From positions 14,384,001 to 14,448,000 of the forward strand of contig NC_135760.1 in NCBI RefSeq assembly GCF_052425735.1: 64,000 nucleotides of DNA. The letters run 5' to 3'. Position numbers and translations under genes: made by a program. The stretch comes from Oculina patagonica (Eukaryota). Position 1 is the first letter of the stretch, and every line of letters begins with the position of its first letter. Below are positions 40,801 through 45,684 of this stretch, in pieces. Under the pieces are notes generated by a model. It had not been told where the DNA came from. It was given only the letters and a program-made list of their open reading frames with translations, and searched no databases.

Positions 40801-41103
40801 ATCTTAGGTTTACATACATTTATATGTTAACCATGATCATGAGTTCAAGTTTCAGATATGGAAGTATACTTGAATTAGTGTACAAACCCATAGTTTTCAA
40901 TCATGGCGTATCCGATATTAACGTCACTACATTTTTACAACTTTATAATGGAAATCACAAGACAAGAACCAATCTTCAAACTTACATGCAGCATGTTTTT
41001 GTTCAGCCAGCTCCTTCTGTACTAAAGGAGACTCTGCAGAAGCCCCATTTGAGAAAAATCGCCTTGAAACCAAGTTCAATCGGGAAAGTATGCGCGCCGC
41101 CAT
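37840..41103 (-). CDS. COX6A: Cytochrome c oxidase subunit 6A, 3 exons: 41103-40986, 38157-38006, 37935-37840; ~121 aa
   Basis: Arg-rich mitochondrial presequence; [13 protein letters not shown] transmembrane segment; [28 protein letters not shown] signature. Confidence 0.95.
39355..40560. mobile_element. Middle element flanked by a 9-bp direct repeat (Mutator-like TSD)
   Basis: tgccagatg at 39346-39354 and 40561-40569; subterminal agatcgctcc / ggagcgatct motifs. Confidence 0.55.
39775..40370. mobile_element. Inner Tc1/mariner-type MITE
   Basis: ta|cagtcaactctctct ... agagagagttgactg|ta; repeated gtgtccgtcttatag motifs. Confidence 0.75.
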
Positions 41104-41273
41104 CTTGAAACTCTTCGACTGGTGCTGATAGCGTCGAACAGACGTCTGGGATGTCCTCAAGATAGACCAATCAGAGCTCGCCTTATATTGCACCACCAAG
41201 AGAATCCAAAATGGCGGCTTGACCTTTCACTCATTCACAAGAGTTATTGATTGTAAAAAAAAATATTCAAAAA
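41104..41273. promoter_or_regulatory. Putative bidirectional promoter between COX6A and the RWD-GTPase gene (170 bp between ATGs); CCAAT box, YY1-like motifs, 3-codon uORF at 41211-41222
   Basis: gaccaatcag at ~41165; caagATGGCGGC (-) and aaaATGGCGGC (+). Confidence 0.6.
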
Positions 41274-41992
41274 ATGGATTATTTAGAAGAACAAAGAGAA
41301 GAAGTTGAAACATTGAAGTCTATATTTCCTGAAGAATTCTCAGAGCTCAGTGTTTTTCCACCGACGTTTATGATCAGAATTGATGACCTAAACATTTCTT
41401 CTTCTGTTTCATCCATTCAGCTGAAGATTTCTCTTCCGGAAAAATATCCGGACGAGATTCCTTCCTTCGAGATCCCAAACCGCTCCAATGCAATGCCAAA
41501 AGACTTCATAGAAGAACTAATCACCTTCTTACGATGTTCATGTGAACAGTATATTGGAATGCCTATGGTGTTTGGTCTGGTGGATTCAGCCAAAGAATGG
41601 ATCAATGAAAACGCGGGAAAGATCAACAGCTTGGAAAAAGATGAATCTGTAGTGGTTGAAACTGATGGAGAAGTCAATGATCAAGACTCAATCAACTTAG
41701 AAAATGTAAAAGACAAGCTAGAAATGATCAATGCAAAGGGTGGAAAATGGAACTTTGTCATTGGCCTTATTGGTAATTATTAATTTTTGGTAATAATTTG
41801 CATCAATGGCAAAACTCGTGTTTCTGATTTGTTTTCCATGTGCCTATTTAACAATTAGACTACGAGCCCGGGTTTTTTATGAGAAAATATTCAACGGGGG
41901 GCGGGCGGGTGTTTTTTCTCTATAGAGAGAGAGGGGGGGTATTTTTTTTTTTTTTTAAAAAAAAAGGAATAGTATAACAAAAAAACAAAAAT

Positions 41993-42028
<36 letters not shown>

Positions 42029-42071
42029 TTTCTTAAATAACTACCCACGGGCGCCTGTTTTTTTTCACAAG

Positions 42072-42103
<32 letters not shown>

Positions 42104-44601
42104 CCCATCTAAAAAAAAAAAAAACAGTTTATTATCATTGTTATTGGAGCACAATTTCATGGTTGGATACTTATGTCACTTGCATACCAGGCTGCATTTT
42201 ATGCAGGTAACACCAGATCTTCAGCATGGATAAAGGACCTTGGCATTGACTTTATTTAAATACCTTTGGCATACCTTTGGTGTGGTGTGTACACGGTCAT
42301 GCAGCATGGCTTGCACATCGATGATTTGTACTTCAACGGCTTCTTTCTGTTTCACCACTGTTTGAAGGGGGGGGGCACTTTCATAAAAAAATTTCCTGCA
42401 CAGAAAAACGGCTGAAAAAAATCATGCAATGGGAGCCATGGGAAAAAAAAATAAAAAACATCTTGCATAACCTAATGGTGAAAAAAATATCTTGTTGAGA
42501 AAAATTGCCCCCCCTCCCCCCCCCCCAAAAAAAAAAGTAATTTATAATGCTACATCCTTAACCAGAATGATCGTTAGAGATTGTTTGGCAGTCGACCACC
42601 AGCAATCCCTCTTTTCCCAAACTTCTTTAATCAAGAAAGGGGAAAAAGGAGCATGAGGATAAATGAGCTATTCACACAACTGTAGTCATGTTTTGCACTC
42701 AAGAAGGGGCACCCCATCTTTCATGTTTTTGCTTGAGTACCACCCAATACCAACCCCCTCCTCCCATCCCTTAGTCATTGTCCTCATCTTGTAAGCTCGT
42801 ACAAACAATAACAATTATAATTATTGGTGTTGTTACAACAAATTGTATTTCTTTTGTAGGAAAACCTTCTGCTGGAAAATCAACATTCTTCAATGCTGCC
42901 ACTCACCAAAACATGGCTAAGATAGGGGCCCACCCATTTACGACAATTGAGCCAAATATAGGCCAGGCATTCTATTCAATACCATGTCCATGTGCACAGT
43001 GGAGTCACAGATGTCAAGCACGGTACGGTCACAGTGCTCTAGGTGAAAGGTTTGTTCCAGTCTTACTCAAGGATGTGGCTGGTTTAGTACCCGGTGCATG
43101 TGAAGGAAGAGGACGGGGAAATAAGTTTCTGAATGATCTGCTGGATGCTGATGTGCTTGTTCATGTTATTGACCTGTCTGGGCAGACTGATGAAGATGGA
43201 AAACCTACCACAGGTATTTAACACTATTGACTGGATTGATTTGAAATAACCAATCAGCACACTGATTTTATGTTTGGGGGATCGTCAAGTGACTGTGATG
43301 AGGCTCTACTTGATTTGCACTGCAGGGCTTGAAAAGAAGTGCTGTCTAATTGTCTGACAAGGAGATTTTCCTGCAGGGCAAGTAACATTTCTTGCTCACC
43401 AGCCTGATGCGCAAGGGCCTTGGCAAGTCATCTGCTAACTAAATCATACTAAAACGTAAACAAAACAGGCATGCCCTGGCCAAGCAAAATTTGAGAGCTG
43501 CTTGCAGTTCAAGTTTTTTTTCTTGAAAGCCCTGCACTGTCTAAAAAAATAGTGGCTAAAAGAAATTATTTTAACTTGTTGAATTGTACATACTTTGCCA
43601 TCCTTTAGTGAAATGCCTCATTGCTTTTGAAGATATGTTCACTCCTTCCAGGGCTAAAGCTTAAAACCTGAATTACAAACAGTGATTTCTCTCTTTTGTC
43701 ATCAGAGTATGACCCCAGAAGAGATGTGGAGTGGATTCAACAAGAACTTCACAGATGGATTTATGATAACATCATGGACAAATGGGATTCTATTAAAAAG
43801 AAACCATCTAAACTCCGTGACATGTTTACTGGGTACCACACCTCGCAAGCACTGATTCAGCTAGCATTTGACTCCACAGGAATAACAGACGAAAAGCTTC
43901 TCGCTATTCCAAGGATGGAAAAAGCAAAGGCTGAACTTTTGGTGCACAAAATAGTTGATAATTTTTTGCGGCTACGCTTTCCTATTCTGTTAGCTCTCAA
44001 CAAAGTTGATCTTTCTGATGCTGCTGATAATCTAAAGAAGTTTCAAGAACAGTCTAATGACATGATAATGGTCCCAGTTAGCGCAAGAAGTGAGTGTGCT
44101 CTACAACAGAAGTGCAAAGATGGTCTCATATCATACCAAAGTGGAGCATCGCATTTCAATTTTAATGTTCAGCAACAAGATGAAAATGACAGGTCTGACA
44201 AAGAGTTAGCAGATATCAAAGACAACATTCTTGAAGTTTTTGGTGACACTGGTGTTCTGCGAGCCTTGTCACAAGCTGTAAGTCTGCGGTCACCAGTGTA
44301 TGCATTTCCTGTCAGCTGCCTTGACACCTGTCAATCAATCAGTATCGTTACAAATGAGAAACACCAAGTTCTCAGGGACTGTATTGTGTTAAAACCAGGC
44401 ACAACAGTAGGGAAACTTTTTGATATTATGCTTTATCCACCAGTTTCTCTTCTTGCTGGAGAGTATGTAAGAGCAGAAGGGATCAATTCAAATGGAGTGA
44501 AAAGTGTGTTACATAAACATGACCTTGTGAATGAGTCAAACCAGATTATTAAAATTATGAGCACAAAGAAAGCTTCTTCCTCAGCAAAGACAAGAAATTA
44601 A
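41274..44601 (+). CDS. RWD-domain + Ygr210/archaeal YchF-like Obg-family GTPase with C-terminal TGS-like domain, 3 exons: 41274-41772, 42860-43213, 43706-44601; ~582 aa
   Basis: RWD (EEQREEVETLKSIF, EKYPDEIP, GMPMVFGLV); G1 GKPSAGKS, G2 PFTTIEPN, CPC..C insert, G3 DVAGLVPGACEGRGRGNKFLNDL, G4 NKVD, G5 VSA; C-terminal DCIVLKPGTTV...IIKIMST. Confidence 0.9.
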
Positions 44602-44679: not shown

Positions 44680-45072
44680 TTGCGTTCGACGGTAGGAGAA
44701 CGCATCCTAATCTTGCGGTGGCCTGTGGCCCCGTGGTTGTCCTGTGAACGCGCAAGCGAAAGTGGTTCTATATGTGGTACTATGTATGTCGGTATGTGGC
44801 AAGTTGGCCTCGATCTCATGTGATTAGACATTAGAAAGCAATTAATTGCGTCACAGCAACATCAACAATGACATTAAGCCGCAAAGACACCGCGCGCAAA
44901 AACAATTCAATTAAGCCGATACCGCTAGGCTGCCGCTGTAAACAATTTTTGCGTTCGATGGTAGCAGTCCGTATCCTAATCTTGTGAACTGTGGCCCTGC
45001 GGTTGTCTTGTGAACACGCAAGCGAAAGTCGTTTTATGTGTCGTTCTATGTATCTTGGTATGTGGCAGGTTT
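44680..45072. repeat. Two diverged ~125-bp direct repeats (~270-bp period) between convergent genes
   Basis: ttgcgttcga(c/t)ggtag...atcctaatcttg...ctgtggccc...ggttgtc...gtgaac.cgcaagcgaaagt...ggtatgtggca at ~44680 and ~44949. Confidence 0.75.
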
Positions 45073-45684
45073 GCTAATTAATGACGTCGGAGTTTCTTTG
45101 CGAGAGACCTTGGGAACGAGGTTGATTCGTTCTAACGATCTTCTTCGGTTTGCATTTGCGTTTTCCGCAGTCCTCCTTTTAACAGTAGTAAAAAAATTGC
45201 TGTGCTGCCTCGTGCACTGTTGGATTGAGATTGTTTTTCTGATAGTTTAAAGTGATGTTGGATACGCGCTTTATGTTGCACGCGCGGTCGTTTTAAATTT
45301 GTATGACGATATAAACAGTCGTGTAATTCGGATTACGTTTGCTAGCCTTATCTTGGGTACCTATCTTGGGTCGAACGCACTCCCCTAATCTCTGATTATT
45401 ACTAGTAATAATTAATAAAGTTTATCACAATTTGTCAAACTGTATTTGTTTAATAAATATGTTTAGGTACACTTTTAAAAAATGACAATATTTGATAGCA
45501 AACCATGCATTAAATAATGTTTTGTGCAATTAAAGAAAAAATCGAGCAGTTGGCTTTCCAAGGTAGAATAAATATTTCTTTCTCCATGACATATTTTTTG
45601 TAAAAAAAAAATGGACAATAAACTGTTACATGCTGAGCAAAATTTGTTTTTAAATTTGCTGTAATGCATACAGTGTAGACGGCA

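Follow-up and report, generated by a model that had tools for sequence, protein, structure and literature searches.

Whether an RWD domain and an Obg-family GTPase are genuinely encoded as one polypeptide, and what such a protein might do in the cell, is the question raised by a gene in a stretch of 64,000 nucleotides from the coral Oculina patagonica (contig NC_135760.1, positions 14,384,001 to 14,448,000), here called the window. The gene lies on the plus strand at 41274-44601, reaching from an ATG at 41274 to a TAA stop at 44599-44601, and has three exons (Table 1). Joined, the exons give a coding sequence of 1749 nt and a protein of 582 amino acids (aa) with no internal stops, and both introns, as read from the sequence, are GT-AG introns in phase 1. 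Exon 1 ends in GGKWNFVIGLIG, and its split glycine codon runs on into KPSAGKS of exon 2 to make up the P-loop. Since the RWD domain and the first strand of the G domain with the start of the P-loop share one exon and one frame, the fusion is not a product of gene-model joining. The protein begins at once with the RWD, without a presequence, and the 529-Mb coral genome was found to hold one PF08438 locus, that is, a single locus of the Ygr210 type. The analysis established a functional, single-copy gene that encodes a cytosolic protein of a distinct 'RWD-type' branch of the Ygr210 subfamily.

The splicing and the fusion were both supported by relatives of the gene. Residues 1-581 of the spliced protein aligned with an ortholog of 582 aa from a related coral (P0187) at 80% identity, and the exon junctions were gapless in alignments with this ortholog and with those of Acropora, oyster, amphioxus, an ascidian and a snail. 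The open reading frame (ORF) of P0187 is uninterrupted at 75-1823 of a 2035-bp Logan contig (SRR10968394) and begins at the RWD. In blastn against the window this contig gave three abutting blocks (41272-41776, 42859-43217 and 43703-44576), which are the three exons, and because its uninterrupted ORF has no room for introns of 1.1 and 0.5 kb, the contig supports the predicted splicing. A preliminary description of the locus, made from its sequence, had proposed that exon 1 splices in phase onto KPSAGKS, and the three blocks bear this out by skipping both introns. Public assemblies yielded 31 clusters of exon-1-like ORFs, presumably of related corals, with 45-95% identity to exon 1, and 27 of these carried YPxxxP and GGxWxxxxGLxG in one frame that degenerates just after GLIG; as the frame ends there in these 27, the exon-1 boundary is conserved. 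The claim in the same description that the fusion is genuine was upheld by the single frame of exon 1, by the collinear ortholog contig and by these clusters together. When exon 1 was used in a word-index search, the matches were exon-1-sized ORFs of related genomes only, without stand-alone RWD proteins, and a homology search with the 582-aa ortholog returned no full-length protein from Oculina patagonica itself. The ratio of nonsynonymous to synonymous substitution rates against the ortholog contig was 0.13 overall, 0.086 in the RWD and 0.158 in the linker, the highest in the protein, and every part of the protein is under purifying selection.

Exon 1 matched the RWD profile PF05773 over its full length (profile positions 1-112, E = 2.1e-21, 76.6 bits against a cut-off of 22.8). 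Compared with the PDB, the coral RWD was closest to that of RWDD1 (2EBM, 6.7e-19), with GCN2 (6e-3) and RNF25 (1e-2) far behind. In a Foldseek search with a model of the ortholog, 2EBM was again the best match of the RWD, with a template modelling score (TM) of 0.78 and 34% identity, as against 23% identity to the GCN2 RWD; the resemblance to RWDD1/DFRP2 that had at first been seen by eye was confirmed by both comparisons. RWDD1 also led for the RWDs of oyster (RWDD1 6e-17, GCN2 1e-5, IMPACT 0.016) and Entosiphon (RWDD1 3e-8, GCN2 3e-3), and GCN2 was ahead of RWDD1 in Ichthyophonus (9e-7 and 9e-5, respectively). Because the best PDB matches were RWDD1 or GCN2 in four of four members tested, the RWD of the fusion family belongs, by these sequence comparisons, with the GCN1-binding RWDs of the RWDD1/GCN2 kind, an assignment that is new to the literature. 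Within the YPxxxP motif, Y58 and P59 were invariant in 58 family members. In the AlphaFold model of the ortholog the linker has helices at 114-129 and 142-152, with a predicted local distance difference test (pLDDT) score below 50 at 129-137. At the junction with the G domain, W159, G164, L165 and G167 were invariant or nearly so across the family.

The GTPase body was identified from profiles, motifs and fold. Exon 2 matched MMR_HSR1 (2.6e-12) and PRK09602 (5.4e-47), and exon 3 matched YGR210-like_G4 (PF08438, 4.4e-24, 85.4 bits against a cut-off of 24.7). PRK09602, the NCBIfam model of a 'YchF-related putative GTPase', was covered by exons 2 and 3 together at positions 10-124 and 129-396 of 397. 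The G1 motif GKPSAGKS is at residue 167, the G3 motif DVAG at 238, followed by LVPGACEGRGRGN, and the G4 motif NKVD at 383. All of these G-motif columns were invariant in 58 homologs, and from its motifs the GTPase looks active and GTP-specific. By sequence its sole real match in the PDB was Pyrococcus 1WXQ (7.6e-16). The AlphaFold model of P0187, made with a 58-sequence alignment, reached a pLDDT of 89.2 and a predicted TM (pTM) of 0.74, its only disordered stretch being 129-137 of the linker. Foldseek with this model ranked 1WXQ first (E 1.6e-20, TM 0.79), followed by YchF/OLA1 structures including YchF on the 50S subunit (8KIE). The C-terminal domain of the model is beta-beta-alpha-beta-beta, and archaeal relatives among the cluster members carry the Pfam TGS domain. 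The protein is thus an Obg-family GTPase of the Ygr210 type with a three-domain, YchF/TGS-like body, and the Obg-family GTPase with a TGS-like tail that had been described beforehand was found by PF08438, by PRK09602 and by 1WXQ in both sequence and fold. The domain composition expected at that time, RWD with MMR_HSR1/Ygr210 and TGS, stood for RWD, MMR_HSR1 and PF08438; the Pfam TGS model itself did not match, though the 1WXQ fold including its beta-grasp did.

In its parts the coral protein resembles the Rbg2-Gir2 pair of yeast and the DRG2-DFRP2/RWDD1 pair of animals, which likewise bring together an Obg-family GTPase bearing a C-terminal TGS-type domain and an RWD of the RWDD1 type. It differs from these pairs in that both parts are in one polypeptide and in that the GTPase is of the Ygr210 type and not a DRG. 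Unlike DRG proteins, the coral GTPase has neither an N-terminal helix-turn-helix nor an S5D2L insert, and unlike DFRP2/RWDD1/Gir2 the protein has no C-terminal DFRP domain, by which those proteins bind and stabilise DRG2/Rbg2, the RWD being followed by a linker of 45 residues and then by the G domain; a Pfam profile search of exon 1 found no family besides RWD. The DRG-type profile PF16897 (MMR_HSR1_Xtn) scored 14.3 bits on the coral protein, below its cut-off of 35.2, and Rbg1 structures matched the ortholog model with TM values of 0.28-0.31, far below 1WXQ and YchF. The protein is therefore no DFRP, as it lacks that domain, and no DRG, given the PF16897 score and the poor match to Rbg1, and its likeness to Gir2-Rbg2 is one of logic and design, not of family membership. 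With canonical Ygr210 GTPases (yeast YGR210C, S. pombe SPBC428.15 and P. horikoshii PH0525, the protein of 1WXQ) it shares the G domain with the glycine-rich motif, NKxD, YGR210-like_G4, the helical insert and the C-terminal domain; these differ in lacking the RWD, the linker and the GGxW motif and in starting at strand beta-1. YchF/OLA1 proteins share the G domain, the helical domain and a TGS-type C-terminal domain, and YchF binds the ribosome (8KIE), but they carry a YchF-GTPase_C domain and lack an RWD. Their preferred nucleotide is ATP, and their G4 motif is altered. The FSH1-RWD-Ygr210 proteins (e.g. Cre12.g538200) have the RWD, the linker, the GTPase core and the GGxW-beta1 junction of the coral protein, from which they differ in an additional N-terminal serine hydrolase of the FSH1/OVCA2 type of about 200 aa.

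The architecture was then found to be an ancient eukaryotic family and not special to the coral genome. An exhaustive search with exon 3 gave 590 cluster representatives, most of the best being 550-1000 aa long and matching in their C-terminal part. All ten of the nearest full-length representatives combined RWD, MMR_HSR1 and YGR210-like_G4, four of them with an N-terminal FSH1 serine hydrolase in addition, and among the 69 nearest representatives the G4 domain was present in 67, MMR_HSR1 in 57, RWD in 42 and FSH1 in 35. RWD-GTPases were found in molluscs, amphioxus, annelids, ascidians and other cnidarians, namely in Acropora (575 aa), in many molluscs and in Branchiostoma, Capitella, Lineus and Phallusia, among others, and partial gene models of the family in Desmophyllum and Nematostella (GTPase part only) and in Saccoglossus and Glandiceps; the window protein is 48-50% identical to those of molluscs and amphioxus. 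The FSH1-RWD-GTPase form occurred in choanoflagellates, ichthyosporeans, chytrids, dinoflagellates, stramenopiles, euglenozoans and green algae, with examples in Salpingoeca, Ichthyophonus, many chytrids, Symbiodiniaceae, Polarella, Tribonema, Plasmodiophora, Entosiphon and Tetraselmis. In the RWD-GTPase of Chrysoparadoxa no more than a remnant of FSH1 was matched at the N terminus, and Diplonema had FSH1 and the GTPase with no RWD by Pfam. The search across eukaryotes suggested in the preliminary description thus showed one or the other form to be widespread from animals to green algae. Several members come from transcriptome assemblies (TRINITY, MMETSP) in which a single ORF contains all the domains, so that these share one mRNA. 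RWD-less canonical forms, such as those of Dictyostelium, Rhizamoeba and Cladochytrium, begin at strand beta-1. They had a long branch of their own in a quick maximum-likelihood tree, which is unrooted and poorly resolved at depth; in it the window protein fell among cnidarians within Metazoa and the dinoflagellates formed a separate clade with 100% support. No insect or nematode members were seen in the homology hit lists, and an inventory of GTPases (PMC4263083) recorded Ygr210 in yeast but in none of Arabidopsis, rice, C. merolae, human and E. coli. From these data we infer that the family traces to early eukaryotes and that the animal form is a version without the N-terminal FSH1, the loss of FSH1 in animals being read from species distribution because of the limits of the tree. 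Five FSH1 domains used in tblastn gave nothing better than E 0.58 in the window, and FSH1-like loci of the coral were on other chromosomes only. Two FSH1-RWD-GTPase proteins of Chytriomyces hyalinus (P0201 and P0289) also carry precomputed PF13563 and PF07823 matches. We take these to be families of the 2'-5' RNA ligase / cyclic phosphodiesterase (2H) type, in which case they would hint at RNA-end or tRNA-related chemistry in some lineages.

The fusion of RWD and Ygr210 is already visible in databases, and the coral gene is one ortholog among hundreds. The common model organisms do not have the fusion. All database names are automatic ('uncharacterized GTP-binding protein YGR210C-like', 'C428.15-like', 'RWD domain-containing protein' and 'ribosome-binding ATPase YchF'), and a literature search for the RWD-Ygr210 fusion gave no functional study and one mention, in a supplementary legend. 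This is the state of knowledge that had been anticipated, i.e. an architecture with automated annotations and no characterisation found. The Chlamydomonas protein Cre12.g538200 is an FSH1-RWD-Ygr210 protein, and a strain without it exists as a by-product (PMC12711092).

A role for the fusion protein is suggested by the systems that it resembles. Gir2's RWD is both required and enough for binding to Gcn1 and connects Rbg2 with Gcn1 at the leading stalled ribosome (10.1101/2020.10.31.363135), and GCN2, IMPACT, DFRP2 and RNF14 bind the same region of GCN1 via their RWD domains (PMC10931611). By analogy, the GTPase/TGS body of the coral protein would bind the ribosome like its relatives YchF/OLA1, Obg and Rbg/DRG, and the N-terminal RWD, on a flexible acidic tether, would dock on the RWD-binding region of GCN1. 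Through such docking the GTPase would reach stalled or collided ribosomes, and it would compete with GCN2, IMPACT and DFRP2 for GCN1, and the logic of the Rbg2-Gir2 (DRG2-DFRP2) pair would be realised in one chain, on a different Obg-family GTPase. A GCN1-recruited GTPase is the most economical proposal because an RWDD1-like RWD is tethered here to an Obg-family GTPase whose nearest characterised relatives bind ribosomes, and the RWD-Ygr210 protein is quite possibly, if still tentatively, a ribosome GTPase that is recruited by GCN1 and also competes with GCN2.

Several points weigh against a GCN1-recruited GTPase. That the RWD resembles RWDD1 is no proof that it binds GCN1, as RWDs can have other partners, and GCN1 binding, association with ribosomes or disomes and competition with GCN2 are all drawn by analogy for the whole family. 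The Pfam TGS model found no match in the window protein by profile search, and the structure model is that of the 80%-identical ortholog and not of the window protein. Ten sequencing runs contained 31-36% of the sampled words of the gene and stayed below the 5% threshold for words of intron 1, which is an indirect hint only of a transcript of the species' own; some intron words were present in two runs. High-throughput data on yeast YGR210C, a homolog without RWD, are in conflict, one protein-interaction analysis placing it in an eIF2B/eIF2 module (PMC2233647) and others grouping it with proteins of the small-subunit processome (PMC1940025, PMC4839750), and Gcn1 is named by neither. These yeast data would favour another possibility, on the doubtful side in our estimate, in which the RWD-Ygr210 GTPase is real but its RWD binds another partner or stabilises or regulates the GTPase intramolecularly, with a role in initiation (eIF2/eIF2B) or small-subunit biogenesis and not at collided ribosomes. 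Several RWD proteins, e.g. RWDD3 and kinetochore proteins, do work without GCN1 (partly from PMC10931611), and the pTM of the ortholog model together with the high pLDDT of its RWD and body would allow a fixed intramolecular arrangement. However, the linker is predicted to be disordered and tether-like, the best matches of the RWD in all four members are GCN1-binding RWDs, and the contradictory yeast data concern a paralogous branch that lacks the RWD altogether.

That the fusion is an artefact, be it a chimeric gene model, read-through of two genes or sequence from a dinoflagellate symbiont, is very improbable. Homologs do exist in Symbiodiniaceae (Cladocopium, Durusdinium and Effrenium), but the dinoflagellate proteins are longer (757-966 aa), mostly carry FSH1 by Pfam and form their own fully supported clade. 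The 80%-identical ortholog is only 32-35% identical to them, below the identity of the window protein to molluscs and amphioxus given above. Symbiont contamination was rejected since the tree places the window protein with cnidarians in Metazoa, far from the dinoflagellates. A chimeric model was rejected in view of the full-length alignment with the ortholog and of its contig, which carries the whole 582-aa ORF without a break and collinear with the window; moreover, a single open exon encodes both the RWD and the first G-domain strand.

GCN1 is now regarded as a hub on collided ribosomes at which the RWD proteins GCN2, IMPACT, DFRP2-DRG2, RNF14 and RNF25 compete, and a conserved RWDD1-like RWD that is hard-wired to a different Obg GTPase suggests a further client of this hub. 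For the Ygr210 subfamily it is the first testable functional lead, none having appeared since the subfamily was defined. The proposal is directly testable, as the family occurs in tractable organisms such as Chlamydomonas, Nematostella, Salpingoeca, ascidians and chytrids. If the RWD does not bind GCN1, what is left is a well-conserved but ordinary domain fusion already listed in databases. A more far-reaching and rather unlikely extension would make the RWD-type Ygr210 proteins a third, cis-wired and GCN1-docked GTPase arm of ribosome-stall surveillance, dating from early eukaryotes and originally coupled to an FSH1-type esterase. Such an arm would have been overlooked because vertebrates, land plants and C. 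merolae are without the subfamily and budding yeast has kept the RWD-less form only. As a 'Rosetta-stone' fusion it would further predict that yeast YGR210C works in trans with an RWD protein and Gcn1. The FSH1 domain of non-animal forms raises the question of which ester a ribosome-tethered enzyme would cleave.

Table 1. Exons, introns and encoded domains of the RWD-GTPase gene in the window.
Feature	Position	Strand	Description
Exon 1	41274-41772	+	Residues 1-166 and first base of G167; RWD, linker, first G-domain strand and P-loop start in a single open frame
RWD domain	41286-41603	+	Residues 5-110; PF05773; YPDEIP (YPxxxP) at residues 58-63
Linker	41613-41747	+	Residues 114-158; helix extending from the RWD, acidic low-confidence stretch, short helix
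GGKW motif and strand beta-1 (WNFVIGLIG)	41748-41772	+	Runs into split codon of G167
Intron 1	41773-42859	+	Donor GT 41773, acceptor AG 42858-9; skipped exactly by ortholog contig
Exon 2	42860-43213	+	P-loop GKPSAGKS (to 42882), G2 FTT, Cys-rich insert, G3 DVAG (43072-43083), glycine-rich GLVPGACEGRGRGN motif
Intron 2	43214-43705	+	Donor GT 43214, acceptor AG 43704-5; skipped by ortholog contig; protein alignment gapless at residue 285
Exon 3	43706-44601	+	Helical insert, G4 NKVD, YGR210-like_G4, C-terminal beta-grasp, stop TAA; PRK09602 to 396/397
YGR210-like_G4 domain	43993-44313	+	PF08438
G4 NKVD	43999-44010	+	Residue 383
C-terminal beta-grasp (TGS-like) domain	about 44293-44577	+	Fold match

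Intron 1 is rich in homopolymers, with A/T tracts of 20-35 bases and with G/C runs at 41900-42110 and 42500-42540. Upstream of the RWD-GTPase gene lies a divergent, head-to-head neighbour on the minus strand, with a first exon at 40985-41106, an ATG near 41106 and a GTAAGT donor near 40985. The N terminus of this neighbour looks like a mitochondrial presequence. As the two start codons are only about 170 bp apart, they probably share a bidirectional promoter; between them are a CCAAT box near 41168 and a AAAATGGCGGC motif near 41210. Just 3' of the stop codon, at 44680-45074, a unit of about 267 bp was found in two tandem copies, 84-86% identical (44680-44808 and 44949-45074). No tRNA was detected in this repeat by ARAGORN, and the unit may belong to the short interspersed or satellite-like repeats.

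The GCN1 gene of the coral was located at C3:13824075-13835807 on the minus strand, with HEAT_EF3_GNC1 and HEAT_GCN1_C_2 exons. It is on the same chromosome as the RWD-GTPase gene, about 0.6 Mb away, which is too far to suggest a functional linkage. The RWD-binding region of GCN1 lies around R2259 in yeast and R2312 in human, and in the coral gene it is spread over exons of 25-78 aa; no Gcn1 chain was matched when a single coral GCN1 exon was searched against the PDB. At least 11 RWD loci were found in the coral genome. No RWDD1-like exon was among the matches of a six-frame genome search with the RWD, and RWDD1 is probably split into small exons. The best RWD paralog was 29% identical and, as read from its sequence, RWDD4-like. 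Two identical RWDD4-like RWD exons were present, one at C8:19820236-19820544 and the other on a small unplaced contig (C1379:8721-9029), probably because a haplotig was left uncollapsed. A pair of neighbouring, paralogous RWD exons about 9 kb apart (C3:3225797-3226438 and 3234696-3235331) each have a long acidic, serine-rich insert inside the RWD and look as if an RWD gene had been duplicated in tandem.

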